From assembly GCA_009103225.1 (NCBI GenBank), contig RHPI01002630.1, positions 1-64,000 on the forward strand: a DNA stretch of 64,000 nucleotides, read 5' to 3'. The notes beneath the pieces are model-generated. The model was given only the letters and a program-made list of their open reading frames with translations, was not told where the DNA came from and did no database searches. A program made the translations under genes and the position numbers. The stretch is from Chlorokybus atmophyticus. Its lineage: Eukaryota; Plantae; Mesostigma and Chlorokybus algae. Every line of letters starts with the position of its first letter. The first letter of the stretch is position 1. This document shows, one piece after another, positions 1 to 46,882 of the stretch.

Positions 1-637
1 GATACACCCAATGCAAAGCATGCAACAACAATGTTGTTAACGTCTATTGCCAGATGGCTACATCAAGCAGCAACTCTGCATGTTTTGGGCTCCTGAGGTT
101 CCTCTGACCCTTTTCCTCTGAGGTCGTACCACCGTCTCAAACGTGCTCTTTGCAGTTGGTCGGAGGCGCGAGAGGAAAAAAGCTGCTGGCGGTGGCGGCG
201 GCGGCGGAGGACAATGTAGACGGTGAGAGCGCGGGCACGAGACTAGCACAACATGCACCCAACGCTGGCAGCCATCTTCGCCCTGCAGCTCGCTTTGCCG
301 CTACTGCTTCCAGCAAGCAGAGTCAGTAATTGCATGTGTGCCCGGTGCTTGTCTCGTCTGTGACTCTCGCTAGGCGGAGCAGTATCAGCCTGGCTTGAGC
401 AACAATCAACGCTTTCATATGATTCCATCATGTCAAGGGAACCCCCCTGCATGACAGCCATCTTGAGTGGGCCAATCACTCAACTGCACGAGTTCAACTT
501 CAACAACGAAGAACATGCATTAGACATGCCCAAGCGTTCGCGTTATGTTTCTTGCCGTTGTGATGCTTCCATGAAAGCCGCTGTGAGACACATCTGGCTA
601 TGGCTGAGTGCTACTCCCTGCAAGCAGCTTGACGGAG

Positions 638-3600
638 ATGAATCATTACGGCCAGAACGCCGCAATAACAGCTGCGCAGCTGTTGTTGGCGTTGCTTGTA
701 AACTCCAGCATTGCGGCGTAGCTGGCCTAAGCTGGCGTTCACCTTGAATGCTACCTGTTGTCACGTTTGCTGGCGTACACTTTTTCTTGGAGTTTGCAGC
801 TGTAGACGGCCTGACTTCCATGGCGGCGAACATGTGGACAGCTGCAAATACTAGTCAGGCCATCGGTGCTTGCATGACGACATGCAAGCACCGATGGCCT
901 GACTACCACATGGTTATTAAGTTCATAAGCATCATTTGGATTACGATTCATACCCTCGTGTGCGCAGGCTGCATCGGCACCAGGCTGCCCATGCTGCTAC
1001 ACCGTGTTAGCCAGCCAGGGGCCTTATAACGTCATTGAAGGTGGACCCAACAGCTTCAAGGTATCCTTAGATGAGTTTCTGTGTGCCAATGCTTTCGAGA
1101 GCGCCACAACACCTGGGGACGTCACCACCGTGACACCCTTTGCTGGCGGTCAGCAGGTGCGTGGCCACACATGGGCAACGATCATGTCTTGCTATGCATT
1201 GCAGATTGGCTTTCATGATTAAGTCTGCAAGGCTGGCGGGTTAAAGGGCCAGAACATGTTGACATGCATGCTTAGGTGGTGATCCCCTGTCCAAATGCCG
1301 GTGCTGAAGCTGTTGCATACACCAACACCACGTGCCAGCGGTTGGGGGCAGCTTTGGATGCGGGCTGCCAATACGCCTCCGTGGCAATCTCCCCAAAAGC
1401 AGGGTGCAGCATCGATTCTGCAACAGGAACCTGCAGCTGCGCCCCGGCAGGTTCTGCTCCTCCCGCAGCAGCGCCAGTCAGCTCAACACCACCGCCATCG
1501 CCACCCACATTGTCACCGCCACCCTGCCGTATCTGCGGTGCGGGCCAGTGGCAATTGCGTTGTGTTTGGAAATATACAGTCTCCTTGCGTGAGAGGAAGG
1601 GAGGGGGCACGCCAGGCAGGGGGGGGCAACATGCTGTCATCTGTAGCGCAACCATATGTTCAACGAGCCAGTCCTTATGAAAGCAGCATGCATAACAGCA
1701 ACAACCGCAGCGTGGACATGTGTTTACACTGCTACTTGTACCACATTGTGGTCGTCGTTACATTGAGTGCTTGCCGCAGCTGTACACGATGTGTGCGCAA
1801 TGTGTTGAGGGACTCTGACTAGCCATTACGCAGGTGGGAAACTTGCTGGCGTTATCATTGGCAGCGTTGTCGGAGGGTGCTTGGTCGTTTGGCTCTGTTA
1901 TTGGCTCTGGCTCCACGGAAAGAGCCTGCAAACGTGCTGCTACTCTGGAGGTACTCACATGGCAGAGCAACCTTGTTATGCTGCAATCACTAGGCTAAGC
2001 ATTTGTAATTGATCGATTCTAAACTGCGTTTGTGGTGCTGCTTGCAATCTCAAGTAAACGCTCCCTAGCGTAGTGTTCTTTGAATCATTGGATTAGAAGC
2101 GAACTGCATTAGAACCAGCCACCTGTTGTATCATTATTTCCGTGGTGCTGCACGCAGGTTATGGTACGCCATCGCGTACGGCAAACGGTGATCACAATGG
2201 GGCTAAGCGTACTAGTAGCACCACAACCAATGCACCTGCAGCCATTGCGAGTGTGGCAAAAAGCAAAAACCAGCCTGGTCTTGAATTGATCGCCATGCAT
2301 GCATCGTCGGGGCCAGCAGGTGAGCCGCACTGCGCCATTATGCTGCACGTGTTGCACGTGTACACACAACACCTGGGGCAAATTGTGAGGCTTTTCAAAG
2401 TGAAGGATGCCTGCGCTGTACAAGTCAATTGCAACAGGCTGTTGTCTACTGTTGACTGGAATCAGCTCAAACCAGCAGTCAGGCATCAATGCAGATGGGA
2501 CTAAGCCTTCTAGTAGCACCACAACCGATGCGGCTGTATCCATTGCAGGTGCGAGAGAAGCAAAGAACCAGCCTGATGGTCTTGAACTATTGGTCCCGCA
2601 TGTGTCACCGGCGAACCACACGTATCTCAATCCGGCCACTCCTAACAATGCTGCTATTGCGTGAGTTCAACTACAGCTTTCCTTGCAATGCATGCAGAGC
2701 AATCCTGTTGCGACATATGCTGCACCGTGCTTGTACCATGTTGCATGTGCTGTGGCAAGTAGGCGGCACGAACAAGAGGCAACAGGGGCGCTGTCTGCGA
2801 CGCCAGCAGCAAGATTGACAGTGTTTATCAGCTACTGCCAGTTCGACAAGCATCACGCAGAGCGCGTGCGGAGACTTGCCGAGCAACTGCAACGAGACAA
2901 CATATACGTCATTGTGGACTACAAGAATAAGTACCAGTCATGGCCGGCTTTTGTTGGGCAGATGCTGAACGATGGCACCAAGGTACTGCTTGTCACGTCA
3001 ATCTAGTAGTGAACACCTTGCGCATGGTCGCTGTCGTCAACAATCCCCAACCTCTGGCAGCTTATGCAGTAAGCAGGCACATCTGCATGACAGCAATGCA
3101 TTGTGATCGGTTTGCTGATTACTCGTAGTACTTCAGGTGATCGTTGCCTGTGATGAGCATTATGAACGGTACTCATTAAAAGAGCCAACCGCAGCTGATG
3201 AGGTGGGAGCGGGAACGCACGACGAGTATACGAACATACTGAACAGGGTTTATGAGGAGCAGAATCTCTCTGGGTGGTTGGTTCCAGTCATCTTCCGGCC
3301 TCCCGGAAACAGAAACCACGTACCTGCGCAGATTCGGAAGTTCAACTACTACACCCTTGTCAATGAGCAGGCAAGTTCACAGAGTGTAGTGCATTTGCTC
3401 CAAGCTGCACATATTATTACAAGGACTTGCAGCATGCGCCTACTCACATTAGCAATACTTGACTGCGCGTTTGTATCAACATGGGCCGCATGGTTTTGTC
3501 TTCATCAGAATACCTGGGTTGGTTATCAAACCCTCGTTGAGCGCTTGGGAAGTGTTCCGGCCTTCGCGCACCCCTTGTCTCATAGGTATGCGTTTCGGCC

Positions 3601-4339
3601 GGTTTTGCAATTGACGTGCAGTGACCTACCACATGACCTACCACATGACACATGTACGCTCAGTGCATTTTCTATTTGCAGTCCCCCAGACCCATCAAGA
3701 GCGGGCGTTGTTGGCATCACTGGAGCAGCATCACCGGAGCAGCGGACACTTGAGACAAAGCTTACAGACCAGTGGCTCAAGGAGATACAAGATCCCATGG
3801 ACACAATAGCAGACTTCACGGAAACCTCTGCAGACCATTACGCCAAATTCAGAGCGTATCGCGGTGGTGATGACAGCCCGCAAGCAGAGCGCTTGAAAAA
3901 GATCGAGCGCGCACGCAGGTTAGACGACATGCATATGCATTGCACTTGCATGTTGAGTGCAATTGCAAGCTTGCTGTAAGTACTGATATGTTGCTCGCAC
4001 CAACCTGACAGGGTTTTACAAGACTTCTGGCGGACAGCTTACAAATACTACATGGATGGCATGTTGCCTCCTGACTTTTTCAGCAAATCCAATGTGTGGT
4101 GTGAGCGAGGCAACCATTTTCGGCTGTTGGTTGAGCCGTTTCACATTGCCAACTATTATCGGCAAGAGCTGTGGAAGCAGTGGCCTGTTGGCAATCGACA
4201 TTACCTTGAGGCAGACAATCGGCCAGAGTACTACACGTTTTTGGAGCTGCTATACGAGGAACATTATAAGACTGCACCGCCGTCGTCCACAGAACATGCG
4301 TTGCAGGAAATGGATGCCATTGAAGCAAACTTATGTTGA
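638..4339 (+). CDS. Predicted single-pass membrane protein: signal peptide, Cys-rich ectodomain, Pro-rich stalk, TM, SEFIR (TIR-like) domain, EDS1-type EP domain (~674 aa, 11 exons)
   Basis: Manual splice model: 638-717, 1015-1156, 1276-1537, 1834-1950, 2158-2319, 2495-2660, 2763-2982, 3137-3370, 3509-3585, 3682-3918, 4012-4339. Total 2025 nt, all junction phases consistent, no internal stop. Exon 1 (MNHYGQNAAITAAQLLLALLVNSSIAA) has a weak donor, and the exon 3 donor is uncertain. Exons 4-11 are well supported by motifs. Confidence 0.78.
1834..1950 (+). other. Transmembrane-helix exon of the receptor-like gene
   Basis: Translates GGKLAGVIIGSVVGGCLVVWLCYWLWLHGKSLQ, a typical type-I membrane anchor. 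Flanked by cag (1831-1833) and gt (1951), phase 1 on both sides. Too short for the ORF track. Confidence 0.8.
2821..3570 (+). other. SEFIR/TIR-like domain (exons 7-9)
   Basis: VFISYCQFDKHHAERVRRLAEQLQRDNIYVIVD matches the SEFIR N-terminal consensus (VFISYS...H...V..LA..L...GIDVILD). It is followed by K|VIVACDE, GAGTHDEY..I, LVPVIF and the C-terminal GYQTLVERL..VP. Confidence 0.85.
3371..3508 (+). other. GC-AG intron
   Basis: Donor cag|GCAAGT and acceptor ttcatcag. Removing 138 nt joins SEFIR NEQ to NTWVGYQTLVERL. The GC donor is conserved (cag|GCAAGC) in the paralog at ~24940. Confidence 0.7.
3820..4270 (+). other. EDS1-family EP domain (exons 10-11)
   Basis: After removing intron 3919-4011: HYAKFR...ERARRVLQDFWRTAYKYYMDGMLPPDFFSKSNVWCERGNHFRLLVEPFHIANYYR...HYLEADNRPEYYTFLELLYEEH. 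This is colinear with the EDS1/PAD4/SAG101 EP motifs YYDSFK, R.ELAGFW, LP.DF, W...YRRLVEPLDIANYYR and Y...GRP.RY. Confidence 0.9.
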
Positions 4340-7300
4340 TGTGCATGTTGAAGGCCTCTTAGATGTTTGCTTTGTTGTCGAGCACAGTTCTTATGGCCAT
4401 CACCAATGTAGATATATCGCCAAAGCTACCTTCCTCTCGTGTGATGTCAGCACCAGATGGCAAGTTGGCCGCAACACGCACGGTGCGCTATACCTTCTGC
4501 TGCTGTTTTAAGCTTTGAGCCTGGGTTGCGCAGTGTTTGCTGCTGCTACACGATAAGCTTGCTTGGGCAAAGCTGTTCCCAACCAGTCACTTGATTGTGA
4601 TGTACCACGTCAATGACGTGGTTTTGCAATGGAGCAAGCTGCAGCCAGTGTGGCAAGTGCTGATGACTGCAGCTAATTCAACAATCAGGTAGGTTTGGTA
4701 CTGGCTCAGTACCAAACCTACCTGTGTTACTGAGCCATCATCATACCTGCAGATGAGGCACCAGGACTCATGGATCCTCGTGACGCTGAGGTCTGCAGCT
4801 GCAGGTACGAGTGGCTCAACAAAACTGAAACTAGCAGTAACTGGAAGTAGCATTGACGCGCCAAGAAGTGACTAGCCCTCGTGATATAACTTTCGCACGA
4901 AGCTGTCATGTCACTGCTTGCATTCATGATCAAGACACGCTGCTGACAACATGGTAGCAGCCAGCTCGTTGCTGTCATGTTCTCCATTGCAATCATGACA
5001 ACCCTGCATTCCGCGGCCAGCATACAAATTTTGCGTGTCTTCCATGCTGCGTACGGGCATCTGCAACACGTCCTATTGCAGGTGACTGGTAGGTGCTGGC
5101 TGGCATGCACCTGCCTCGCGTCTGCCACTACTTGCTCAACATTGGTTTTTACAAACGCTTTTGCACCGTTGATGTGGGCTGGATGCAGAAATTGACAACG
5201 CAGTTGTATGCAGCATGAGTGGTCGCAAAGTGATAGTACAAAGCGCCGTAGAATGTGATTCGGTTTGTAAGTGCGTGCGCGTGCGCGCGCGCAGACACGT
5301 GTGCGCGTCAATGTACATGCATGTAGACCACACAACAACAACAGCAGCAGCAGCAGCGGACACTACATGTCGCCGTCCACCATTGCATCATCATCTGTTG
5401 CAGCAATTGTGTGACGAAGGGCATGTACCATTGGCTTGATAATAGTTATGGATGTGACAGATCAGTAGCACTCATAACAGGTATACCAATTACGGACAAG
5501 TACAAGTTGTCCGATCAGAGTGCAGTGTCGCTTTCTAACCGTCAACAACATATCCTCGCTGCTTCAACATGAAGCATGCACGTTGTCATTGTTGACTGGT
5601 TGGAGTGGACATGTTGGTGACACATCCACAAACCATCACTCTCCTCTGCGACTTACCACCTACAATGGTCAGTAACTTACTGAAGTTAATGCACATTATG
5701 CTAGTGTTTGGGGATGATGCAATGGTTGCTACATTTGTGGGCTTATTAACCTACTTTGCTAGTTTGCGACAACCCTTCCAATTGCACTTGCACACATGAG
5801 TCATGTGTCCACGAATGTGTCAGAACGATCGTCTGCGAGTCATCGACAAAGGTCATCAACACCAATAACAACAACAACGTTGCGTACATGTCACAATGCT
5901 GTGCTGGCTGGAGTAGAATCACAATAGCGACAGCGACGATGACTGAATCACTAATCTAGCCAGCCGTCAACCCACATTATCACTCTTGTCACCAACATTG
6001 CGACCATGTACCTGGGCTGACACGATCCGTGGCCCACCCGCACGAGCACGCTCGCTTGCGTCTACCTCATCACGCATGAACCTGCGTGAGGCGTGCAGCT
6101 CCAACCCCCTTTGTCGTGCACACGTGATGTGCAGCTATTAATGAACGCTGGTAATGAATGCTGTTACCAAAGTACACATAGTATGTCATGTAGATAACAC
6201 GCACTCGCATATGCACAATTTGTTCTGATGCGGTGGGTAGAAGAGACTCCCAAACCATACAAGTGGCACAATGTTAGGCGGTAGCGCATACAAGTGCAAG
6301 GTGTTCAGGTTAATATCAGTAACCGTCGCATTCACCGCAAACAAGGGGCGCCTAGACAAAGCATGGGGTTGCATCTGGTTTATTATTATTGAGAGTCGGC
6401 TTGGAGTTACTGTCTGCTTGACATTCGGCTGCTTGACATTGGGCTGCCAGTGTGCATGCAGGCAGGTGCGCTTGTGTGTAAGAGCGCGCACGAGTGTGCG
6501 TGTGGATTTTAGCATGAGAGACAGCACGAGAGCAGGATGCAGCGGTGCGCATGCACGAGAACGAAGTAAGATTGGGGAGGGGGGAAGGAAACAGGAAACG
6601 GGGAGAGAAGAAATGATGGTAGGGGCGGGGGAGAGAGGCAGAAAGAGAGTTCGGACGACAGCAGGTTGACTTCTACTAAGGAAAACAGCAACCTTACTTA
6701 CAAAGGAAACAGCAACAATGGTTGCTATACACCCAGCCTTTCACCACTGCCTCCGCCTCCTCCTCATGCGCTGCCGCCGCCGCCACCAAAACCCTGCCTC
6801 GCTACCGGCCGGTGATGCAAGATTGAAGCGATTGAGACTCATCACCAGCTTGTCCTTGTGGGCGTGGGCGGCGGCAGCATCGTCGTCTTCATCGCCGTGC
6901 AGGCGTCATCATCGCCTGTTGGGTGGCTGCCTCCAGCTCGGACATACCAACACACAGGTTGGTCTCCCACTCCGTCGCCTCTCCTGGGCGAATCATCATG
7001 CTCTCGATCCTACACTTGCAAGCATCAAGCAAGCATACAGCTGCCTGTTTGGGTGTGGTTGAGCATGTGCGCATGTGAAGTGAGCGTGTCGAGAATGCGT
7101 AACCGCGTGCAAGTTTTTGTGTGAGTACGAGCGAATGTGATTATGCGCAAGTGTAAGTGCAATAAGAGCAAGATTACACGTCTGCGACTATGCGGTTGAA
7201 GAACATGTGAACATGTATGTGCGAGACTGCATGTGTGGATGAGTGGTAGTGCTTCAGTTTGGTTCAGTGGCTGTGCGTGTGTAGATTGTAGGGTTCAGCC

Positions 7301-8907
7301 TTTGTCGACACATGCAGAGTGTGTGAGTGTCGTGCTGTTTACCTTTGTCCGCTGCCCAACAACCATATCCGCATGCAGTTGACAGCACCCTTGCAAGTAC
7401 CATGCTTAGTGTTGTATTTGCTTTGTGAGTGTAGCCTGTCTCAGCAATGTACCCAATTTGCTTGCTCATGCATGGACGCAGTATGCCCAGTAAGCCATCC
7501 AACCATTGTTTTCTTTACAAGGGCAGCGCGGAGAGAGCCGCAGTGATATATGCCGCAGTGATACAAAACTTGCAGCACTCAGCATTGACTGAAACAGCGT
7601 TCTCGGCGCTGTCTCATGCGCTCGGAGCGTAGTTGTTTTTGTATCTCTTCGCTGATCACACTGCCTGCACCAACAAAGCCTACACCAAGAGGACTGGCTA
7701 GTATGTAAGTCTGAAGGGCCAATGCAGCATGCACTGAGTGCTATGCACGCGTTCGTCACGCACATGAGCTTGCACGCCACAGCATACCATTCCCATAATC
7801 AACCATTTTCACACATGCTTTACCACCGGGTTCTACCTCCACTACTCTACACTACACCTGCTCCCACCTCACCCTGTTGGCCATGCACGCATGTATGCAT
7901 GGTCGTTACCATGCCATACCACGGTTGTCGCCTCAGTGTCGACCCACATGCGCTGAAACCACAAGCAGACGACCAGCAGACTCCCCCTCGCCGCCGCTCC
8001 CGCTCCCGCACCCTCCACCACCAACAGCCGTTGCCGTCTCCAGTGCTGAAGCTCTGAAGTTTCGTTAGCTGTCATGCAGCATGCACGGTTACCATGACCA
8101 ACAGGATGCATGCGCTGCACTCCCTTCATGATGGCGGCCATGTGTGCTTCACCATGATGACACGGGCAGACGCTCTGCTCTCCATGTACTTGCTATGCGC
8201 TGTAGTGCGTTGTCTTCGTCACTGCCATGCATGGCTCATAGGGCGGGCTTCCACACACAACCGATGCATCTACGCACCAACGCATGCAAGGTGCCCCCGG
8301 TCTGGCACCTACTGATATGCTACATAATGCAACAGCATGCAAACCATGCACGCGCTACTCGCTGCCACAGTACGCATAGCCTCGCCTGGCAGCGACTATC
8401 ACTACAAAATCAGGGCGGTATTCAGACGTTGCGAAATCAGCTGTAAGTAGCTTACAATCAGTCACAAAGGTCTCCTACCACTACGTCTTAAAATGTCAGT
8501 CCTAATGTCAGACGTTTGCACCTGACAGTCATGCTTTACACTAGCTCCTCACCGTTGATACCAGTGCTGAAAGTCAGCGTTTTGTGACTGACTGTCATGC
8601 ACTTCGTAATGCTGGAATTCAGTCATTGTGACTTGAATTTGTGTTATGCATTGCACACATGCAACGGCTTGCATTCGCACTTGAAGTGCTGGCATTCAGC
8701 AGCCCAACATGTACAAGCAATGCACTTGTATTTATACTTGCATTGCTGCTAATCAGCACCCAATGTTTGAACGCAGCAACTGCACCACCAAGTGCTATTC
8801 ACGAACGCTACGACTCAAGTGCTGGTGATCAGATTTTGAGCGCTAACTACAAGGATGTATCAGGTAGCTATCAAGCCGCTACACGTAACCGGCTAGTCAA
8901 GAACTGT

Positions 8908-18824: not shown

Positions 18825-19562
18825 TCACAGGCTACCAACCATTTGCCGCATAGCTATCCTTAGTTGGTTAAGGCTATCCTTCCAGCGAAGCATCATTGGC
18901 TGACGGTTGTCACTGCTGAGGCTGTGCGCCTCAGCCAGTTCCTTTGCTCTAGGTGGGACACGGGTGGGGTAAAGCTGCTTCCAAGCTTCATCAAGGGAGC
19001 TCTCCACCGTCTCATCTTTGCGATTGTACACTTGGCAGTACAACTCTTGCAGGAGGTAGTAGCGTCTTGGCCGGCTACAACTGGCGGCTGGGTGGCTGCG
19101 GAGGTAATGCGGGGGGTTCTGTCTCGTGGTATTATCGCGCCCGTACCATTTAGCAATATCGAAGGGCTCAACAGCTACGCGATAGTCGTTACCACGCTGT
19201 AGCCATGTGCTGTTCCTTGAAGACAGGAACCCAATAGGAAATGATCCGCTGTCATGAACATCTGTTACCCAGTCCCAAAACCCTGCGAGCAAGCGTCGGG
19301 CGTCTTCAACTTGCTGGATTTCAGCATCTGCAGGGGCTGTCCTTTTCCTGCCAACTCTGAAGCGAACATAACAATCTTGGTATTTGTCTCTGTAGCGAGA
19401 AACAATCGACATGGCCTGAATCATGTCTTTGGTGTACTGCGTGTTCAACTGAAACATCAACTGCAGCTTGCGGTCGCGGCGGCCAAACCACAGATTGATC
19501 AGCGAAAGAACTGTTCCGAGCGCACCTAATACAGCGCCGAGAATGCTGATTGAGTCCGCCAT
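18825..19562 (-). CDS. Intronless membrane-anchored EP-domain protein (245 aa)
   Basis: N-terminal hydrophobic helix SISILGAVLGALGTVLSLINLWF followed by RRDRK. Then EDARRLLAGFWDWVTDVHDSGSFPIGF...WLQRGNDYRVAVEPFDIAKWYG...HYLRSHP...RPRRYYLLQELY, the full set of EP motifs (LAGFWD, EPLDIA, RPRRY). ATG start, open frame. Confidence 0.88.
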   Translation of the reverse strand: MADSISILGAVLGALGTVLSLINLWFGRRDRKLQLMFQLNTQYTKDMIQAMSIVSRYRDKYQDCYVRFRVGRKRTAPADAEIQQVEDARRLLAGFWDWVTDVHDSGSFPIGFLSSRNSTWLQRGNDYRVAVEPFDIAKWYGRDNTTRQNPPHYLRSHPAASCSRPRRYYLLQELYCQVYNRKDETVESSLDEAWKQLYPTRVPPRAKELAEAHSLSSDNRQPMMLRWKDSLNQLRIAMRQMVGSL

Positions 19563-20949
19563 GCCGGATGGTGCAAATTGACACTGCAGCTCGCCCAGCG
19601 CTGCCCTGTACGGAGTTGGAATGGCTTAATGGCATGATGCGTCCATGCAAGCGAGTAGACTGTTCGTGTACACTCTGTGACATGATACACGCACAATGCA
19701 AACACATAACTAGTAAGCACAGCACAGAGTATGATAGTGTGTAAGGGTGCTGTCGACTGTAACAATGTCCAGAAATGGTTGTTGCCAAGCGGAATGGCCA
19801 CGAAAGGACACCCACGCAGTAGTAACATACCTGCATTTTTGAAAACGCTGCCCCCTTGGACATGATACAGACACAAACTTTAATGTAGATTCGGTCCTTA
19901 CCATTTAATCACACATGCAGTCCCGCGCATACATCTTTGCACGTGCTCCCTAACACACACGACTCTTTCTCTCACTGACACTTGCATGCAGTTCAACTAC
20001 ATGATGCATGTTCGCTAGCACACTCACCCCACACGCAGCGTCACCAATATACTTTTACCCCCCACACACACGCACATCCTCACTCTTACGCACTTAGACA
20101 GCAAGCTGGACTTGACACAAGCTTTCAAGGAGAAGCTCTAGAGTGGTCAACAGCTGGATGCTTGCAAGAATGAATGCATGCGTGCAAGTGTGGGGTAGAG
20201 AGCATGGAAAGCATGAAAGCACGACTGCGGAGCGGCGGAGCGGAGCGGCCAACCTGCGCTGCAGCGGTAGGTCCCAGGTGTAGAGGCAGCCAGCCGCCAG
20301 GCAGCGATGATGACCCCTACGACTGCACGGAAGACGACCAGGCTGCCGCCGCCCCCGGCCAGCATGTCCAGCTAAGACAACCCCACTTGCCTTGACTTCT
20401 TCCTGCCGAAAAGAGTTTGCTAAGCAAGAGGCATGCACCCTCCCTCTCGTAATAAGACTAGGAGCTAAGAGAATAGAGGGTGAGTCTACCCTCGAACATA
20501 AAAATGTTAGTGTTAGCTCAGCTAGTTTAGCTGAAGCACAAATCATCAATGTCACACATACAGGTCGCGACCGGCGAGGTCCGGTCGGGACCGACACGGG
20601 ACTGACATGTTCAGCCTACAATTGGCTGGGCGCGAATAGGTAGAAGCCGTTGGATTGGAGCATTAACTGATTTATGAAGTCCATGGGACATGTCCAGCAA
20701 CACGTGACATTTTCAGAAACAAATGTAAAGTGTTCACTGGAGAAATGCACAATGAGCATACCGGTATGTACAAGCGTGCAACCTAAATACAAGCAAACAC
20801 AAGTCAAACAACTCTGTGTCTGTATTGCAAAGGGAGGCCTTCACATTAGGATGGCTACTGTGCTATTTATGAAAAAAACAGTGTTAAATGTTATAGCTTG
20901 TTGAAGTACATGTATAGGCGGCGCCTACATGTAGTTGGTACGATCAGCT

Positions 20950-21100: not shown

Positions 21101-23989
21101 ACTTAGTAGCATAGTATATAAGACACTGTATACTGCTTAATACAGTGGGTCGCACATTGTCTCTATCGTTGGCGTGCTCGCTGCACTTGTCCTTAGTGTA
21201 TGCACACTTGTATGTAGGAGGCAAATACACACACACTAGGCGCATCACTAGTTCTCTACAAACAGTACAGTAGAAAGTATCAAAAAGCGGACTGTTTTGG
21301 CCACCAAGTTGCAAACTATGTGATAATGATGTATAGTCGTGCCATATATGGTTGCAAGCGGAATTTGAAGGCCTACACGAGAAAATTAATGTTGAGATTT
21401 ATGGATATATGGTGTAGCATACCCGGATTTTCAAAGTTGTACGAAAATTGCAGCACAGTAGCCTCAATGGGTAATCATGAAATAACTCATGCTATAAGCA
21501 TGTCATGGCTACCAACCTTGCAATAGCATTAATACATGCTAGCAAACACATGTTGTACTCGCTTGCGCACACATCATCACATTTGAAATGTTATTTAAGT
21601 GATAACACTATTGCACATGGCGCAGCCGCAGGCTGCATTCTTATAAGCATGTTTAAACGCCATGCTCGTGTGCCGATCATGCCAACGAGTAACTCTTCAT
21701 GAATGTCAACGTCATAAAGGATGCCTTCCCAAGAGTGTTTGATTTTTTGAGGTTTACATTTATGGTAGCATGTTATAGCAGTTGCATTAAAATAGTACTG
21801 AAATGCAGTATAGTTACCGGCCAGCCTGTATTAAGCAATTGCTCATAAGCTGAACCAAAGACAGAAAACATTGTTACGCCTTTTATACTAGCCTTAAAGC
21901 TGGTTTTCATATGCTGGTTTTGAGATTGATAGATACAAGTCCATATTAATTGGATTGACAACATAATCCACTTCGGCAAGATCAAAGCTTGGTGAGTAGG
22001 GGGTGCGTCACCTCTGCAGATTGCGTCATCAAAATCATCTACGTTTGTAATGCATATCGGCGTGAGTAAAGATGTTTCTTGGTGGGGCTCTAAATTACGA
22101 TGGTGGCACAAGTTCCGCACTGATATGCACATTACTGTTATTGCCAGTACATACTTGCGGGATTCAGGTTAAGGAGGAGGCGGAGAAGGATGAAATGGCG
22201 TTGATAGTATTGATTGCGTGCATGAGTTAGGCTTGCGAATTCGAATGGACGACAACCGCAAGGTTGAGCGCCGCCTACGAGGTGAACATGAATGGGCGGT
22301 TGGTGGGCTCGATGGGTTATTTATCTTATCAGAGTCGCGGCTGTGCTTAATTAACAAGTTTTATTGCGGTGTCAACTGCAGAGCGCGCACCGTACGTACT
22401 GGCATTCTTGGCATTCTCATCATGCGCGCATGTATGAAGCTGTGCTGAAGGTATTGACTCAATTCGGCAAATCTGTCTTAAAGTTCGAAGCTTTTCCGCT
22501 TCCATCCGTCTGTATATCACGACATCAGAATACATGAACCCAAGTCTAACGCATGCAACACGCGCTCATACAAATACACACGCGCACTACGCAACACAAT
22601 TTTGCAACCTCACCCCAACCCCTACCCACCCAACACACAGATTATTCCACACTATGTTACGGCGGGGGGTCCGGCCGTCCAAGCCATAAAAGACCATGGT
22701 GGTAATTATGGCTATTCTATTCTTATGAGGATTTATAGTTATTCAAGCCCCTTCCAGAGGGCTATCGTAACACACTAACACTTAACTATGCGCGCATATG
22801 GTTGTTGGACGGTTTGTTGACAAGCTTTGGGTTACCGCATACATGTGTACAAATTCATGATCTCAATGTGATTTATCTATTTTGTACATGCCTGCTAAAC
22901 ATGTCAAAGGTGACGGTGCGGTTATCGCAAAATTAATCGACCTGCTTTGATTTGCTACCCACAAGTGTACGTTTTGCAAAACTTAAGCTTATTGTTGCTT
23001 GCTTGTCGTTCAATGCATGTGCTTATTGACGGCGCGCAACTTATGAATCATAAAGACCTTCCATAATCAACATGTTACGCATTCAATGTGGACTTAATGT
23101 GCTCGCTGCAAGCTGTTAAAGTGGGTCGACTCTCTTTTGTATACAGACAAATCAACTTGTTGTGGCAACACAGGTGTTGCGTATCCACCGTTGATAAGCA
23201 TTGAAAAGTAACATTCGAGCAAAATGTGGTCGCATGTGACACTTATGGTTGCAGCCATAAGTAGTTGCATGTGCAACATGACTGTCAACTGAACAAGTTG
23301 TTGTACATTCTTGATGACGGCATCAGCTCAGGTTTTGTTGACCTCTACACGCTGATGAATCACTGAGTGACCCCGCCCCTTGCTATAGGGCTATGCCAAA
23401 ATAAGTACAACGACTGTTTAAAGCGTGATTGCAACATGCAGTATGCATGCAGCCTATTTAGATGCGAGCATTCTATTGGTCTCGTTTCTCCAGTCTTGTG
23501 GCTAGCTCATTGTGCTATGTCATTCCTCTAAAGATGAGCCGTATAGCCGTAACGCGGTTCAACGATGCTGCTTGTTCCGCGAAATGTGTGAGCAACGTCG
23601 ACGCTTTCAAGTGCAAAGAATGTAACAACAATGTTGCAATGTTTGTAACTATATGACTGCCAGCATGCATCAACTTTGATTGGCACGTGCTGCAGCAAAT
23701 GCATCATCTCTATGAATATTGTGATTGGTGGGATCGGCATATCAAGTACTGCATAATGCATGCACAAGACAACCACAACCAACATACAGAAACGCCTATG
23801 CCAAACAGTTTTAACAGCATACAAGAGAAAGGCAGCTTTGACAAGTGTTCGGTAGAATCCTTCAATGACATCAACATGATGATGCTCATAATTACTTTAA
23901 TCGACAAATTTAATTAATATATATCCTACCAAAGAGGCCTTGAACTTGCACAGCAGGTAAGGAGTTTGCTTCAGTAGCCTCCAACACAT

Positions 23990-25000
23990 GTTGTACAGAC
24001 GACAACGATACCAATGGAATCTTATCATGTTTCTTATACTGCAGCTCGAACACCGTGTAGTGCTTGGGTCGTTTTTTCACCCTGAGGTAATTTTAATTAC
24101 CAATAGGCCACTTTTTCCACAGTTCGAGCCGGTGGTAGTTGGCTATGTCAATCGGCTCAACCACAAGCCAAAACGTGATGCCTCTCGCACACAAGATATT
24201 GGACCTGCCGATAAAATCAGCAGGCAACATGCCAGCGACATGCCATTTGTATGCTGTACGCAAGAGATCCTATACAACCTTGTCATGTCAGGTTGGTGCG
24301 GAGATTTCATCAATAAGCATGCTTTTAATTGCACAAAATTTTAAATTGCAATGCATATGCATGTCGTGTCTTGCGTGCACTAAATCTTGTTAACCGCTCT
24401 GCTTGCGAGCTGTCATCATCGGCACGATATGCTTTGAGTTTGGCATAATTGTCCACAGAGGTCTGCACAAATGCTTGGATCAAGAGCTTCGCTATTGTGA
24501 TGTCCTCATTGTGCCACACATTGTCTGTCAACTCTATTTTGTGTTCTTACAACTCGGCGATATCAAACACATACACTCCCGTTGGCTCCGAATCGCTCCA
24601 AGCGTCAAGGCATTATGGCTACACGTGTCGTGTGATAAGACAAGCAGCCATTTGCATGGCAGATGCAAATTAACCTCCGCAATGCATAGCTAGCATGGCA
24701 TACCTATGTAAGAAGAGCTGCACGACGGCCGAAAGACTTCCCAAGCGCTCGACGAGGGTTGTATAATCAACCCCAGAGTTTTTATTGCATGAAGATGAAA
24801 TTAAACCCCGATGTAATCATCGCGCACAGATGTCATATAATGCTATATTGCTTTAACGCATGCTGCAAGCCCTTTCCACGACAGGTGTGCACAGCTTGGA
24901 GCCAATGCATTACCGTAATGCATTGCGTGAGGTGTGAGCTTGCCTGCTAACCTTCAAGGATGACGTAGTTGACTTTCGAAGCTGTGCAGCAGTCACAACG
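23990..25000 (-). pseudogene. Decayed paralog of the SEFIR-EP gene (homologs of the end of exon 8 through exon 11)
   Basis: Minus strand encodes GMLPADFIGRSNILCARGITFWLVVEPIDIANYHRLELWKKWPIGN*NYLRVKKRPKHY and NYAKLKAYRADDDSSQAERL. Nucleotide homology extends to exon 9 (accctcgtcgagcgcttgggaagt), the end of exon 8 and the intron sequences. In-frame stops (TAA 24095-24093, TAG ~24270) and loss of the exon-10 GT donor. Confidence 0.88.
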
Positions 25001-26912: not shown

Positions 26913-28052
26913 TCATGACCAAGACAGCGGCGAGCTGCATAGCACATACCCAAGTGCTACCAATAGCTGTCTGCCAACATACTCCGAGTAGGCCGGGGGA
27001 ATGCACTCAACTAATGTTGTCTCCGCTGATACCCAATCGATGCCTAAAGTCATGCTCCACCCAGGCAATGTACCACGTGAGGCTGCCTGTCTATAGACGG
27101 GGTACATCTGCTGAGTGTCTCCTGCGTCGGTTGCAGCTTGCACCAGTGTGCGGTGTCCGGAAAGTCCTCCAAGACGCTTGGAGGTGTGATCGCAAACCAA
27201 GTCCACGCTCACAACAGGCACCGTCTCAAACACTCGGTGCCTGAAAGTGGCCAGTCCGAACATCGTCCCGCACAACACCATATTAGGTGTCATGTACTGA
27301 GATGCATTAGGGATGTTCTCGATGACAAAAGGTTTGCCGCTAGCATGAAGGCGTGCACGCAAGGCGTGCAGAAGAGTGCTGTGTTGCCATGAGCTCGAGT
27401 GCTGTCAGCGTTGTAACTCAAGTATGCAACGAGCAAAAGCTTGGCACGATGGACTAGCCCAAATTAAATCGTGAGGTTGGATGTCAATTGTTAAGGCATC
27501 GCCGTGGATGAAGCTGAATGGGTAGTCGGGCTGCTCTAGTATATCAACGCCCGTGACGTCAAACCTAGCACGGTACAACCCCATGCTGGCGCCGCCTCCA
27601 CCACAGCATATGTCAAGCACCTTGGGTCTGTGCGGTGCTCCGTTAGGCAGCTGTGCAGTGTGTGTGACCAGCGTAGGGGATGACCTGCTCCATAATGTTA
27701 GAGTTGGCAACGGTGGGTGGGCCTTGCGGTTGGTAGGCACTCGACAACCTCCGATGCGGAAGCAATGGCGAGTACCATTGCTGCACACCATGGCCACTAT
27801 GTTGTGCTTGTCGATGACCATGTGCTGCTCGTCACCGTCGACGAAGTGCACACTGTGCCGGCCTGACGTGCAATTAGCCTATCAGCGAAGCAGTTGCCGT
27901 CACACATGCAGCCCGGGAGCAACATGCGCACCTAGGCTGCTGTTGTAGGCGTAGATGCGACCCTCATACCACGCTTGGTCAGCTGGCCAATGCACCAGGA
28001 CTGCCAAGCCAACAAGCGCTGGCCCGCCGTCGAGACAGCGCTGTCGCACTGC
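26913..28052 (-). pseudogene. Tudor domain + C5 DNA cytosine methyltransferase fusion, inactivated
   Basis: MTase motifs [14 protein letters not shown] (I), VTGVDI, FIHGDAL, WASPSCQ (IV, PC altered), PFVIENI (VI), RHRVFE (VIII), ECIPPAYSEYVGRQL (X). ORFs 27851-27405 and 27362-26913 are in the same frame with one TGA between them. Upstream Tudor LVGLAVLVHWPADQAWYEGRIYAYNSSL|[13 protein letters not shown] is joined by a 69-nt GT-AG intron (27931-27863) with a ctaat branch site. Confidence 0.85.
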
Positions 28053-28262
28053 CTGAACTCAACTCGCAGAGTGCTGGCGTGGACTGCAAATCATATGCGG
28101 TCAGCAGTGCAGATGCCCGTGTAGGCGCACATGGCGTCACTCAACGTCTGCGAGCCGGACATCACCGACGCATACAGCATGTACACGTCTTGTATGTCCA
28201 CTCACCGTCATGGGGGGCACAGTGCTCGATCCCGCGACCACAGTTGTAACAGGGTGTGCAGG

Positions 28263-29235: not shown

Positions 29236-32200
29236 TGTTGAAGGACTAGCATGCACATGTAGTTAAGGCAAGCATGGACACACAGAGACAGAGCTACCGC
29301 CACCAGAGCATACACAAGTCACATCACATTCATCTATTACAAGTTGTCCGCTGGTTCTTATACCAGCCAGTTACACACACGTCTACGTTTGCAAGCACTG
29401 CGTAAGCTATACTCAGCTTTTTGACGCGCTCTAAGCTGCGTTGTCTTCCTTACAACTAGAGCTTTTAAACAAGCTCTTACACGCCTAATATGAGTAAGTA
29501 TACGCGGAGATACAAAGCAGTTAGTAAGGCTCCAGTCTGGAGTCCGGAGTCTGGTCCGACGACGCCAACTTGCTAAGTCCGGACCTAGTGCTCGTCCTTA
29601 CAACCTTCTACTCCTGTGTGGAGGGTCGATGCTGATCGTATGTAGGAATACTCTCAACACTCCCACGCGAGCAGCTTGACCTCCAACGCTTGCTCCTGTA
29701 GTTAAACACAAATGCCAAGTCCTGCGCAACAAGTCTTGAACTTGAGCGATGACAATGGCTTTGTCATGAAGTCCGCCAGCATGCCCTCAGTGTTGCAGTA
29801 CTGGAACTCCACCTCCTTCCTTGTGACTCTGTCACGCACAAAGTGATGCATGACATCAATGTGCTTCGTCCTTGCCGAGGCGATAGGATGCTTCAACAAC
29901 TTGATGGCTCCTTGGTTGTCACAGTTGATGACGATGCACGCCATGGGGTGCTCCAAGTCTGCCATGAGCTTGCGAAGCCAGAGTGCCTCCTTCACTGCTG
30001 CTGCCGCTGCCATGTACTCAGCCTCTGATGTAGATGCTGCTGTTGTTGGCTGCAGCCTGCTGTTCCAGCTCACCACGCCTCCGTTCAGCTTGAAGGCGTA
30101 GCCTGTAGTGGACCTCCTGCTGTTGAGGTCACCAGCAAAGTCTGAGTCGCAGTAGCCCTCCAACTCAATGCTCCCGCTCCCAAACTTGATGCCAACTGTT
30201 GCGCTCCCAGCAACATAGCGTAGTACTCCCTTTGCTCTCCAGTGCTCCATGCTCGGTGCAGACATGTAGCGAGCAAGTACTCCCACAGCATGTGCAACAT
30301 CGGGACGTGTGCACGCTGCCAGATAGAGCATGCTGCCTACCAGCTCACCATATGGATAATGAGCCTTGTCGAGTACCTCCTCATCCTTTGCCTTGATGAG
30401 GGCAGTGCCAAGTGCCAACGGTGTGCTCTTAGTCTTCGCTTCAGTGAGCCCAAACTTGGTGACGAGTCTTCTCACCATCTGCTCCTGACTGATCTTGATT
30501 GTACGTGCAGCCCTGTCGCGCTCAATCAACAACAACATGCCAAGGAACCACTTGGCCTCTCCAAGATCACGAACTGAGAATGCTTGCTGTAGAGCAAGTT
30601 TCGTCTCCTGCAGGTGGTGCACCTGCCTGGCGGTGATGATGATATCATCAACATACACGAGCAGCCAGACCTTGTTGTCTACATGGATGAAGAGCCTAGG
30701 GTCTGCAAAGGATGCGGTGATGCCAAGTGCCTCCAGCTCCTTGGTGAGCTTGATGTGCCACATACGCGGTGCCTGTCGCAGCCCATACAGTGCCTTGATT
30801 AGCTTGCACGCTGTGCCTCTCTCCCCTTCTTCATATCCAGGTGGTTGCTTGATGAAGATCTCCTCTTCCAGCTCTCCGTAGAGGAAGGCAGTCTTCACAT
30901 CCAAGTGATGCAGCTCTAGGTCTTCAGCAGCAACCACAGCTAACAGTGCACGGAAGGTGGTGTGCTTACTTGCGGGTGCAAATACTTCGTCAAAGTCCAC
31001 ACCTTCCTGCTGCAAGAAGCCCTTTGCCACCAGTCTTGCCTTGTAGCGCTCAATGTTGCCCTGACCATCACGCTTCACCTTGAAGACCCATTTCACTGAA
31101 ATGGTCTTCACTCCTTGCGGAATCTGCTCCAATGACCAAGTGTTGTTGGCATGGAGTGACGCAATCTCCTCGTCCATAGCACGCTGCTATTGCTCCGCAT
31201 CTGGTGCTAACAATGCCTCCTCGTAGGTGCTTGGCTCCTCATTGTGCACACTGGCGACGTGTGCCTTGTGTAAGAAGTCAGGTGCCTTTCTCTCCCTCAT
31301 TGGGTATCTCCGAGCTGCGTGCTCTTGCTGCAGGTGCGACTGCTTGTCTGCCACAGTAGAGTCCTGCTCACCCTTATCATCAATGATGGCCTTGCCTGTA
31401 GCCTCCACTGTTTCAAGATGCTCCAGCTGTGCTTCATCTTCAGGAAAGAAGCCTGCTTCTGGTTGGGATAATCCCTCGTGGAAAACCACCTCTCTGCTCA
31501 CAATGATCCTCTGAGTGTCCTCGAGCAAGATCCTGTAAGCGTTGGAACCCGGTTCATAGCCAACAAAGATGCCCTTCCGGCTGACCGGCTCCAGCTTGTG
31601 CCTAAGCTGTTTAGGCACTAATGCATATGCCGTGCATCCAAACACACGCATACCACTCACATCTGGTGTGGCTCCGTAGAAGTGCTCCCACAGAGTCTTC
31701 TGCTCTGAGCTCACCGGAGACCTGTTGCGGATGTAGTTGGCAATGAGTACCGCCTCCTTCCACATACTGTCTTCCATCTTGGTGTCATTGAGCATTGCTC
31801 GAACCCGCTCCAGGAGTGTCCTGTTGAGGCGTTCAGCTGCTCCATTCTGCTGCGGTGTGTAGGGTGCAGTGGTCTCGTGGCGTATGCCCTTGCTGGCGAA
31901 AAACTCCTTCAACTCCTTGTTAATGTACTCCCCTCCTCGGTCACTCCTCATTGCCTTCATCTTGCTGCTATACTGCGTCTCCAACAAGGCCACAACTGTG
32001 CGCACAGCTCCAGCAACTTCTGACTTGAGCGTCAATGGAAAGATGATGGACAGCTTGCTGTAGTCGTCGAGGAATGTAGCAAAGTACCTGGCCCCTCCCT
32101 TCGCCACAATGCGCATAGGGCCACAGACATCCATGTGCACAAGCTCGCAAGGATGCTGACTGCTAAAAGAGAATGATGGGAATGGCATAGCATGCTGCTT

Positions 32201-34146
32201 TGCAACCAGGCATGGTTCACAAAGTGCACCTGATGCATTCTTGAGTTCTTCTGTGCTGAGATGGATGCCCTTGACCATCTTCTCAGCGACAAGGCGAGTG
32301 AGGTTGGCGTATCTGAGATGCCCGAACCTTCGATGCCACAATGTTGGCGACTCCTTGTCCTTCACCACCATGGCTTGAATGTCAATGTTCTGAGGGTGCT
32401 GCTCCACGTGGTAGAGCCCTCTCGGATCAGCGATTCCAACCATGTGCATGACCCCATCAAGGATGACTGTGCAGCCAACCTTCCGAAATAGCATCTCCGC
32501 GCCTAAGCGCTCCGCAACCCTCACAAAAAATAGACTCGCAATAGCCTTAGGAACATGCAGGACATTGCGTAACAACACCTCGCGTAGTGTGTTACCAACC
32601 TTGCACTGGAGTCGTACGTTGCCAACTCCCTCAGCCACCAGTACTTCGCCACCAAAGCCCGCCACCATAATTGTAGACGTCAGCTTCTTGTAGCCCTCCA
32701 TCACCTCCTTGTTTGGTGTGAGATGACGATCGCAGCCAGAGTCCACCACCCAGAAAGCTGTGCCCGCCCTCGAACTGGATGCAGTGAAGGCGACATGTTT
32801 CTCCTTGTGTTGGTGCTTGTTGCCGCTGTTGCTGGTGCTTGCTCTTGGTTGCCCCTGTTGTTTCTTCCTACAGTCCTTCACAATGTGCCCCTTCCAACCA
32901 CACCAGTGGCATGTGAGGTCTTTGTGACGAGGATTGCCTGGCTTGTTGCCCTTGTTCTTCTCTTCGTGGTTGCTCTTCTTCCCGTGCTTGTTGGTGTAGA
33001 AGGCCACGGCATCAGCTTGCGCGTCCTTCTTCATCACCCTCTGCTCCACGGTGAGCAGCTTCGGTAGCACATCGTCCAACGTCAACTCCGATGATGACGT
33101 CTCCAGCAGGGTTGCGACGACCTCGTACTCTGCTGGTAGCCCTGCAACAATGGCCAGCACTACCTCCGTCTCCCCCATGTTGTGGCCGACGTTGATGAGG
33201 TCCGCCCACAGCTCTCTCGCGCGCGCAACATACTTTGTGATGGGTTCTGCTGCCTCCTTCCTGAGTGCGCTAAGCTGCTTGCGTAGATGCAACTTTCTGG
33301 CATTGTTCTTGGCTCTGAAAACGGCTGATAGCTTTTCCCAAGCTTGTCTACCATCTTCACATGCAGTGAGCATGGGAAAGTGATGCGGTTTGCTGTTCAA
33401 CACAAGCAAAGAGTGTGCTTCTGCTGAATGCTCTGACCACACAGTGTTTGCTCCTGGTGTTGGTGGTGGTGCCTTCGGATCAACGTACTTCCACACCTTC
33501 TTGTGGATGAGCAAAGCCTTCATCTCCAAGCACCATGTGTTGTAGTTGTCGGTGTCCAGCTTTGCAATCTGCCCCTTGTCGTAGGTCGCCTCCATCTTTG
33601 TCGTGCCTGCCTTCACTTGCAGTTGACACCCAAGGCTCTGCTACCAACAAGCTACCGTAGTGTAGAAACTACTATGCACACAAGCTAGTCTCACACTCCT
33701 CAAGCGTAGTGTGGGCCCATAACCTGTTGAAAGACTAGCATGCACATGTAGTTGAGGCAAGCATGGACACAGAGACAGAGCTACCGCCACCAGAGCATAC
33801 ACAAGTCGCATCACATTCATCTATTACAAGTTGTCCGCTGGTTCTTATACCAGCCAGCTACACACACGTCTACGTTTGCAAGCACTGCGTAAGCTATACT
33901 CAGCTTTTTGACGCGCTCTAAGCTGCGTTGTCTTTCTTACAACTAGAGCTTTCAAACGAGCTCTTACACGCCTAATATGAGTAAGTATACGCGGAGATGC
34001 GAAGCAGTTAGTAAGGCTCCAGTCTGGAGTCCGGAGTCTGGTCCGACGACGCCATCTTGCTAAGTCCGGACCTAGTGCTCGTCCTTACGACCTTCTACTC
34101 CTGTGTGGAGGGTCGATGCTGATCGTATGTAGGAATACTCTCAACA
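29236..34146 (-). mobile_element. Full-length Ty1/copia LTR retrotransposon (family A)
   Basis: LTRs 29236-29659 and 33725-34146 (TGTTG...CAACA, about a dozen differences by eye). TSD ACTCC (29231-29235, 34147-34151). PBS GGTTATGGGCCCAC at 33724-33711. PPT next to 29660. Confidence 0.96.
29702..33616 (-). CDS. Copia-A gag-pol polyprotein (gag, zf-CCHC, protease, integrase, RT, RNase H), split by one in-frame TAG
   Basis: CHWCGWKGHIVKDC, WVVDSGC, LWHRRFGH..CEPC, VHMDVCGP, RSDRGGEY, ERLNRTL, LDVKTAFL, LVYVDDII, YCDSDFAGD, KHIDVMHHFVRD. Stop at 31189-31187 in EQ*QRAMDEE. Confidence 0.95.
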
Positions 34147-39700: not shown

Positions 39701-40076
39701 GATTCTCTGGCTGTTTGGGTCCAAGGATTACAGCAGCTAGAAATGTAGTGTCTGTCTTGTGCATCTTGGCAATGGGCAGGTTCAACACTGAGATTGTGAC
39801 AACCCAAAACTCATAGTTCCCTGCAACTCAACAAACCCTTTGCTGCCATTCGTACAGTTACACTGCAACGAGCAGACAGGAAGAAAAATGCTCTTTTATA
39901 CCTTTGTGCGGATCTTTGACCGGGCTCATCCCGTCGATGAACATCGCTAGGCGCACATTGCGTGGTTCTTTTGCAAACCGGCTGTAGCGTTGTTCAGTGT
40001 CCTTGAACATTGGCGAGTCTGACAGCAGCAAGTACACCAAGGGCTTACGACCAACTGCCCCAGCCCCACAACACAT
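36800..40076 (-). mobile_element. tnpD: Second CACTA-type TnpD transposase gene, 5' part disrupted by the LTR nest
   Basis: DSPMF..EPRNVRLAMFIDGMSP, HRRYLPDDHPYR, HDLPYW...VGPMHIFAN, FFPRTSLTMMLHLLGHL...GPTRDHWEWAHERFM, WYGRV...RARWY. Termini not found. Confidence 0.85.
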
Positions 40077-40101
40077 TCAAACATGCATACAATCGCAAGG
40101 C

Positions 40102-40300
40102 TGGATACTGAGGTCTTACATACCGCCCCAGCACCTCGCCGACACACAAACAAACACAGGCAAGGACACCGAGGTCTTACATGCCGCCTCAGCGCCACGC
40201 CGACACACAAACAAACACAGGCAAGGACACCGAGGTCTTACATGCCGCCTCAGCGCCACGCACACAAAAGCACAAGGCACGGACACTGAGGGCTTGCATT
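40102..40300. repeat. 61-bp minisatellite, ~3.5 copies (duplicate at ~49910-50100)
   Basis: Unit ggacaccgaggtcttacatgccgcctcagcgccacgccgacacacaaacaaacacaggcaa in head-to-tail copies without spacers. Confidence 0.9.
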
Positions 40301-40389
40301 GGACTGCCCCAGCCGCTCACCAACACAATCATGCACACAGTCGTGCCTCATTTACCACTGAACTTGGCAATGTTACCGTGTATAGATCG

Positions 40390-46844: not shown

Positions 46845-46882
46845 TTCCACACAGAGCCCTGACTTGTTACCTTTGTTTGCAG

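Follow-up and report, generated by a model that had tools for sequence, protein, structure and literature searches.

A spliced, transcribed gene of the alga Chlorokybus atmophyticus joins a SEFIR domain to a short EDS1-type EP domain behind a receptor-like front end

Introduction

In plant immunology the EP domain counts as the invention that defines the seed-plant EDS1 family, and the question follows how TIR proteins signal in EDS1-less algae, bryophytes and ferns. A gene in the early-diverging streptophyte alga Chlorokybus atmophyticus bears on this question. It lies near the beginning of contig RHPI01002630.1, of which the first 64,000 nucleotides were analysed (the window). It encodes a 668-residue protein in which a signal peptide, a Cys-rich ectodomain, a single transmembrane (TM) helix, a SEFIR domain of the TIR superfamily and a genuine, short EP domain follow one another in one reading frame. 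This fusion had been proposed from hand-spliced exons; RNA contigs and a continuous open reading frame (ORF) now bear it out. Here we describe the gene and its two signalling domains, compare them with known systems and consider how such a receptor may work.

Gene structure and transcripts

Contigs from three RNA runs were aligned to window positions 200-4700, and intron ends were read after stated cut offsets. Together with splicing by hand this gave a gene on the plus strand which spans 253-4339 and has 11 exons and 10 introns:

253-321, plus strand: exon 1, start codon and signal peptide, amino acids 1-23 (joint 321>968 with GT..AG ends; hydrophobic N-terminus)
968-1156, plus strand: exon 2, first part of the Cys-rich ectodomain, amino acids 24-86 (joint 1156>1276 in three runs)
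1276-1537, plus strand: exon 3, second part of the Cys-rich ectodomain and Pro-rich stalk, amino acids 87-173 (joint 1537>1834)
1834-1950, plus strand: exon 4, TM helix (amino acids ~177-199) and Cys-rich juxtamembrane stretch (hydropathy; both flanking joints)
2158-2319, plus strand: exon 5, Ser/Thr-rich cytosolic linker (joints 1950>2158 and 2319>2549)
2549-2660, plus strand: exon 6, linker (joints 2319>2549 and 2660>2763)
2763-2982, plus strand: exon 7, end of the linker and N-terminal half of SEFIR (PADLOC bSEFIR profile, expectation value E 1.4e-9)
3137-3370, plus strand: exon 8, C-terminal half of SEFIR with Glu407, GC donor at its end (PADLOC bSEFIR, E 0.013)
3509-3585, plus strand: exon 9, conserved post-SEFIR helix GYQTLVERLG (kept in paralogs; joints in RNA)
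3682-3918, plus strand: exon 10, first EP helices, amino acids ~497-559, ending in the ARR motif with R559 (family profile against EDS1 392-430)
4012-4339, plus strand: exon 11, EP core VEPFHIANYYR ... NRPEYY and stop codon (Pfam EDS1_EP, E 8.4e-10)

All ten splice junctions were present as spliced RNA contigs; junction depths were in the hundreds and contig identity to the genome was at least 99%. The intron ends were GT-AG except at joint 3370>3509, where a GC-AG intron (3371-3508) was found in all three runs. The corrected coding sequence of 668 amino acids contains no internal stop, and an in-frame stop lies upstream of the ATG at 253. In some details the RNA revised the original prediction. 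The first exon proposed at 638-697 was absent, positions 653-954 being covered solely by a low-depth unspliced contig. Instead, 253-321 with the letters MHPTLAAIFALQLALPLLLPASR is used, and joint 321>968 came from one contig of run X2. Exon 3 ends at 1537, and exon 6, which had been drawn longer, starts at 2549. Exon 6 corresponds to the 3' part of a duplicated exon 5; a linker query matched both 2121-2321 and 2422-2811.

Are SEFIR and EP encoded by one transcript? A 799-nt contig joined exon 2 through exon 7 up to position 2850, which is within the first SEFIR strand. A 763-nt contig covered 2835 to 4078 and reached exon 11, and a third one covered 2545-2864. The 763-nt contig thus links SEFIR to the EP exon. 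Because exon 7 is uninterrupted in the genome, a single mRNA is the simplest reading for the whole gene. The contig break at about 2835-2850 was attributed to a k-mer branch and not to a transcript end since k-mers are common to the Chlorokybus paralog P0076. The letters of a loose contig end at 2816, ELSAAPEAKMTVFISY, agree exactly with the P0076 sequence, and P0076 was also present in the RNA runs. The 668-residue protein was not among the proteins returned by our searches, which included the annotated Chlat1 proteome; probably it is unannotated or differently annotated there.

At 4687-4723 two perfectly matching inverted arms of 17 nt enclose a loop of 3 nt (AGGTAGGTTTGGTACTG GCT CAGTACCAAACCTACCT), about 350 nt past the receptor stop codon and near the end of RNA coverage.

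Receptor front end and topology

The protein starts with a signal-like segment (amino acids 1-23), followed by the ectodomain, a Pro-rich stalk, the TM helix (177-199), a juxtamembrane stretch containing a CC pair, a Ser/Thr-rich linker, SEFIR (~322-455), the conserved helix and EP (~497-655). The ectodomain has 12 Cys between residues 30 and 173 and one NxT site. A hydropathy scan found two hydrophobic segments only, 1-23 and 177-199, in keeping with the signal peptide and TM helix that had been predicted; the 19-residue Kyte-Doolittle mean peaked at 2.36 for residues 172-182, i.e. at the TM helix. The scan agrees with a type-I topology of signal peptide, ectodomain, single TM and cytosolic SEFIR.

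The EP domain

The EP identity of the receptor C-terminus is secure. Pfam EDS1_EP (PF18117), for which the cut-off is 23.1 bits, was matched by exon 11 alone with 39.1 bits and E 8.4e-10 over profile positions 39-116 of 211; in one paralog the match covers positions 27-122. With phmmer, exon 11 retrieved PAD4 356-425 and OsEDS1 474-547 from the PDB at E 1e-4. A family profile was built from 15 EP sequences, of which two come from seed plants or resemble those of seed plants. In the PDB it matched EDS1, PAD4 and SAG101 only, with E from 1.9e-32 (OsEDS1) to 5e-14. Its alignment covers AtEDS1 392-510, the exon 10 part aligning with EDS1 392-430. In a larger alignment of 80 rows (A2; family matches, parts of the paralogs and the window exons), 72 of the rows passed Pfam EDS1_EP at E <=0.001.

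For structural comparison the module of paralog P0002 (residues 55-415), which is 74-86% identical over most of its length, was predicted as a proxy. The EP part of the model had a pLDDT (predicted local distance difference test) of 93-98, the equivalent of exon 10 being above 93. All top Foldseek matches were EDS1-family chains. VIA-align gave Z 15.2-19.3 at a root mean square deviation of 1.5-2.9 A over 152-162 residues, and the top 14 entries all belonged to the EDS1 family. Here the EP range corresponds to PAD4 292-464 and EDS1 362-560; the next matches, with Z <=9.7, belong to the TIR-like half of the model. EP homology is thus backed by HMM, profile and structure. The expected lack of a lipase-like domain was likewise confirmed: Pfam Lipase_3 matched neither any receptor exon nor any paralog.

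The SEFIR domain

The SEFIR of the window was scanned exon by exon. In these scans the PADLOC bSEFIR profile was recognised in exons 7 and 8 with the expectation values listed above, covering profile positions 40-165. Exon 7 as a half-domain gave Pfam TIR_2 at 1e-4 and SEFIR at 2e-3. The paralogs were clearer. PADLOC bSEFIR reached 74-79 bits (E 4e-21 and 2e-22), and Pfam SEFIR (PF08357) reached 41 bits on P0002 against a cut-off of 23 (E 3e-10). The SEFIR assignment of the original prediction is therefore well founded. Exon 7 contains strand A (TVFISY), helix A, strand B (VIVDY) and helix B.

The domain is of the bacterial anti-phage type. The top PDB sequence match was a prokaryotic SEFIR (5y8e/5y8f), and tblastn found SEFIR proteins on plasmids of Deinococcus, Bacillus and Nostoc. 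A word-index search for close SEFIR relatives returned Chlorokybus proteins only. Alignment with three of the bacterial SEFIR proteins found by tblastn gave 23 invariant SEFIR columns (31 over the whole alignment), including VFISY, the terminal Asp of strand B and G-x-G-x3-E. Glu407 (codon 3224-3226) sits in the motif GAGTHDEY of exon 8, in which G, G and E are invariant with the three bacterial proteins. The TIR-like half of the P0002 model matched TIR and SEFIR structures at Z 7.6-9.7, the model being of low confidence in this half (pLDDT 45-78); because of that, an active-site position of Glu407 is putative and derives from alignment. Bacterial SEFIR depletes NAD+ and yields ADP-ribose and nicotinamide (10.1101/2024.02.11.579819). 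We propose that the receptor SEFIR has probably retained NAD+ cleavage: it belongs to the bacterial NADase type, and Glu407 and the other residues invariant in the three bacterial proteins are still present.

Could the whole SEFIR-EP cassette be of bacterial origin, the C-terminal domain of bSEFIR proteins being an EP? A hint in this direction came from the PADLOC match on P0002 and from Foldseek alignments with bacterial SEFIR proteins of the AlphaFold database, both of which extend into the helical region. In hhalign the EP family against three bacterial bSEFIR C-terminal domains reached a probability of 0.6%. Pfam EP was absent from these C-terminal domains at E up to 10, and EP-only sequences had no bSEFIR match. 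This origin is unsupported by sequence.

The SEFIR-EP cassette in Chlorokybus paralogs

An HMMER search with exon 11 over 1.84 billion representative proteins gave 72 matches at E <1e-3, the best of which were from Chlorokybus atmophyticus itself (JGI Chlat1). The Chlat1 proteome contains at least 10 EP proteins, among them:

P0002 and P0076: SEFIR+EP with an N-terminal anchor (precomputed Pfam SEFIR+EP labels in the public proteome)
P0003: leucine-rich repeats (LRRs)+SEFIR+EP
P0004 (Chrsp5S06985): TM, EP, canonical TIR with the WPMKEL Glu motif, SEFIR remnant and second EP
P0001 and P0077: truncated forms
P0012, P0019, P0027 and P0069: small TM+EP proteins

Receptor and paralogs share the SEFIR-EP cassette with 62-86% identity. 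This concerns P0002, P0076, P0003, P0004, P0001 and P0077, which lack the Cys-rich ectodomain and for which our searches found no published function. P0004 is a direct TIR+EP fusion and, one may argue, a better Rosetta stone than the SEFIR-EP gene itself. An N-terminal TM precedes EP in about 15 of 32 full-length-looking members of the EP family.

The window holds three EP loci, i.e. the receptor gene and two others:

18828-19625 and 20255-20365, minus strand: TM+EP gene, Chlat1 Chrsp121S01800 (P0069; tblastn 97.8% and 100%)
23913-24816, minus strand: decayed SEFIR-EP paralog, equivalents of exons 9-11 (74% nucleotide identity to 3824-4271)

P0069 (gene at 18.8-20.4 kb; Pfam EDS1_EP 2.7e-8) is encoded 15 kb from the receptor gene and is a possible EP partner of the receptor. 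ORF 18825-19562 by itself encodes 245 amino acids starting with MADSISILGAVLG, and the annotated extra 5' exon of P0069 may be spurious. The decayed copy (23.9-24.8 kb) has a TAA at 24093-24095 in the EP core, where Arg stands in the paralogs (WPIGN*NYL), and a look upstream of the copy revealed no SEFIR exons. With this pseudogene the window displays a birth-and-death pattern.

Nucleotide-contact residues

In seed plants the nucleotide pockets lie between two EP domains, which are clamped by the lipase domains. The pRib-ADP contacts are D469, N472, Y473, T482, R493 and K478 in EDS1 and R314, K379/K380, Y383 and F387 in PAD4 (Huang et al., 10.1101/2022.04.01.486681). Does the algal EP retain them? 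Across the EP family the columns of the EDS1 contacts rank among the best conserved. In the 80-row alignment D469 is kept in 62 rows, N472 in 66, R490 in 71, P491 in 67 and R493 in 33, and position 473 is aromatic. The receptor itself has H604, N607 and Y608 at D469, N472 and Y473, and K615, V619 and Y633 at K478, T482 and R493; three of the six contacts are thus kept and three replaced. Receptor R559 in the ARR motif aligns with EDS1 R425. At the PAD4 contacts K379, K380, Y383 and F387 the alignment places N, V, E and H. The whole SEFIR-EP subfamily carries Y at the R493 position. Among the small TM+EP proteins, P0012, P0019 and P0027 have retained D, N, Y or W, and R; in P0069 the EDS1-type D469 and R493 are kept and the N472 position is K. 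Judged from these alignments, the pocket chemistry is partly conserved in the EP family and weakened in the receptor copy.

EP domains in other organisms

The original prediction placed EP and TIR-type domains together outside the seed plants. This holds for Chlorokybus with its SEFIR-EP proteins. EP was found also in the chlorophyte Elliptochloris bilobata (P0005, UniRef name 'EDS1 EP domain-containing protein'), and therefore EP occurs outside seed plants. Six EP loci from other genomes were inspected, five on eukaryote-like contigs and one (L012) from Elliptochloris. A TIR or NB-ARC gene was close to the EP gene in half of them:

L002, 1469-6732: TIR gene 4 kb from the EP gene
L004, 7710-9693: TIR_2 gene head-to-head with the EP gene, about 600 bp apart
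L003, 2091-6924: NB-ARC gene 3 kb from the EP gene

The TIRs adjoining EP genes in L002 and L004 keep the W..xEL Glu motif. SEFIR was not found by tblastn in the EP-bearing loci of other organisms.

Two further observations concern EP genes. L012 (GCA_040144335.1, JALJOU010000074.1) has a Lipase_3 gene at 1-4185 and, some 3.8 kb away and on the other strand, a short-EP gene at 8001-8628. This pairs both domain types which compose EDS1, and it may be due to chance. P0042 (Logan SRR36092047, L005 1840-2598) is a lipase-less protein of 252 amino acids with a Pfam EDS1_EP match of E 1e-43 over profile positions 21-165, far stronger than that of the algal short EPs.

Discussion

Comparison with known systems

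The receptor and EDS1, PAD4 and SAG101 have a homologous EP domain with the motifs yYdxF, ARRxLxxFW, LVEPxDIANYYR and RPxxY; the common motifs include the EDS1 ligand contacts N472, Y473 and K478 as well as R425. In contrast to the seed-plant proteins, the receptor has neither the lipase-like domain nor the LLIF helix, and its EP corresponds to EDS1 362-560 only. It is anchored in the membrane, carries an ectodomain, is fused to SEFIR and has H and Y in place of D469 and R493. Its host is an early-diverging streptophyte alga.

With the bacterial bSEFIR anti-phage proteins (Bacillus sp. NIO-1130 type) it shares the SEFIR match, the Glu after strand C and the Asp of strand B. However, these proteins are cytosolic, have neither ectodomain nor TM, and their C-terminal domain bears no similarity to EP. 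The overall layout of an extracellular domain, one TM and a cytosolic SEFIR resembles the IL-17 receptors and Act1, and the low-confidence SEFIR model matched the Act1/IL-17R SEFIR helical assembly with Z 8.3. Unlike in IL-17 receptors, Pfam detected no fibronectin-III in the ectodomain, and the receptor has an additional EP. By sequence its SEFIR is nearer to bacterial SEFIR than to animal IL-17R/Act1, and no Act1-like adaptor was identified. A logical analogue is bacterial TIR-STING, in which a TIR-superfamily NADase domain and a domain of the small-molecule-sensor type are joined in one chain, yet the folds of STING and EP are unrelated.

The architecture had been noted as unfamiliar from the literature. 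Our literature searches retrieved no paper on SEFIR-EP, TIR-EP or receptor-type EP proteins or on algal EP architecture, and the Chlorokybus genome paper does not mention EDS1. Its novelty needs two qualifications. A 2026 preprint mentions earlier reports of short EP-like sequences in green algae, whereas other papers take EP as specific for seed plants; and the paralogs already carry Pfam SEFIR and EP labels.

Proposed mechanism

We consider it probable (roughly 0.6) that the gene encodes a type-I membrane receptor-like protein which signals by clustering of SEFIR and relay through EP, in an immune or stress-type role. Gene model, expression, topology signals and the identity of both domains are established; the mechanism and function we infer as follows. 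The signal peptide and the lineage-specific 12-Cys ectodomain would be directed outward, one TM helix would span the membrane, and the SEFIR-short EP cassette would lie in the cytosol. P0002 and P0076 carry the same cassette behind an N-terminal anchor, and P0003 carries it behind LRRs. A ligand or a cell-surface cue would cluster the ectodomains and so gather the SEFIR domains, as in IL-17R/Act1 and in bacterial SEFIR. The gathered SEFIR would then, probably, cleave NAD+. EP may act as a relay by pairing with another EP, either of its own kind or from a small TM+EP protein such as P0069, and membrane tethering may replace the lipase-domain clamp of the seed-plant EDS1 dimers. Immune or stress-type signalling is the most likely biological role because of the LRR+SEFIR+EP and TM+EP+TIR+EP paralogs and of the TIR and NB-ARC genes adjoining EP genes elsewhere.

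Several points weigh against this proposal. The N- and C-terminal halves of the transcript are joined by overlapping contigs and not by a single full-length read. The ectodomain exons had no Pfam match, i.e. the presumed sensor has no detectable relatives. The SEFIR part of the P0002 model is of low confidence (pLDDT 45-78), and when Glu407 was to be mapped onto the canonical catalytic Glu of TIR domains, hhalign aligned strands A-B only. The EP is short: it comprises about the first two thirds of the seed-plant domain (about 240 amino acids at full length), and there the protein stops. In addition, it is changed at D469 (to H) and R493 (to Y).

The last changes bear on a stricter version of the scheme, in which SEFIR makes an ADP-ribose-derived nucleotide from NAD+ and the receptor's own EP, or that of the partner in its dimer, binds the product in cis. 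In favour are the bacterial NADase type of SEFIR with its invariant Glu, the EDS1 ligand contacts as the most conserved EP residues family-wide, the alignment of R559 with EDS1 R425 and the TIR+EP fusion in P0004. However, D469H and R493Y in the receptor copy weaken it, as do T482V, the Y at R493 in the entire SEFIR-EP subfamily and the exchange of the four PAD4-side contacts for N, V, E and H. A second EP partner or a lipase clamp is undefined, and bacterial SEFIR is known for NAD+ depletion, not for signalling. We regard cis coupling as unlikely. The Rosetta-stone argument of the original prediction, signal generator and signal receiver in one receptor, stands in part: the TIR fusion in P0004 and the TIR and NB-ARC genes next to EP genes support it, whereas a nucleotide signal from SEFIR and its reception by EP are hypothetical. 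Still less likely is the opposite direction of signalling, akin to TIR-STING, with EP sensing a nucleotide from, e.g., canonical TIRs and switching SEFIR to an NAD+-depleting effector at the membrane. SEFIR is an effector in bacteria, and EP genes have canonical TIRs that carry the catalytic Glu motif as fusion partners or neighbours; yet ectodomain and signal peptide imply an external input, and the pocket residues of the receptor EP have diverged.

Alternatively, NAD+ chemistry and nucleotide sensing could be absent altogether, SEFIR-SEFIR contacts working as in IL-17R/Act1 and EP serving as a helical interaction module. Animal SEFIR domains are adaptors, the order of ectodomain, TM and SEFIR copies that of IL-17 receptors, and the D40A interface mutant abolishes bacterial SEFIR defence. 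The Foldseek and VIA-align match to the Act1/IL-17R SEFIR and the partial loss of EP pocket residues fit as well. This pure scaffold is nevertheless doubtful: bSEFIR scored 74-79 bits against 41 bits for Pfam SEFIR, the invariant Glu is kept, and the strong family-wide conservation of EPxDIANYY and RPxRY suggests more than a generic interface. That the gene is non-functional or artefactual, i.e. a chimeric prediction, a pseudogene or an assembly artefact, is very improbable and already largely refuted. One might point to the decayed copy 20 kb away, to the single contig behind the 5' exon and to the annotated proteome, which returned no matching full-length protein. Against this stand the open frame over 11 exons, the RNA junctions at depths of hundreds in contigs of at least 99% identity, and the conservation of 62-86% with the paralogs.

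Evolutionary meaning

Tentatively, and with the odds against it, one may imagine that EP arose not in seed plants but in green algae, where a short and mostly membrane-anchored form would have partnered enzymes of the TIR superfamily (SEFIR or TIR). TIR-to-EP signalling would then be ancestral to the green lineage, and seed-plant EDS1 would have arisen later by extension of EP and fusion to a lipase-like domain. If true, the receptor would show the ancestral wiring in a living alga, its surface sensor being connected directly to the SEFIR-EP module. Either way, an early-diverging streptophyte alga has short EP domains fused to SEFIR, TIR, LRRs and the front end of a surface receptor. The Chlorokybus family offers a clonable test of whether TIR-EP coupling predates EDS1, and for structural and ligand studies the receptor EP is a minimal version that comes without a lipase domain. 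With the receptor, the bacterial NADase-type SEFIR also gains a relative in eukaryotes.

Other features of the window

Two 9.4-kb copies at 39513-48943 and 49321-58759 are 99.7% identical and flank a gap of 377 N (48944-49320); they may be a tandem element or else a duplication made in assembly. The stretch 29622-33202 holds further repeats, which are 94-96% identical to 57745-59733 and 62390-64000. On the minus strand, 26913-28069 contains ORF 27405-27851 with motifs like those of C5 DNA methyltransferases.

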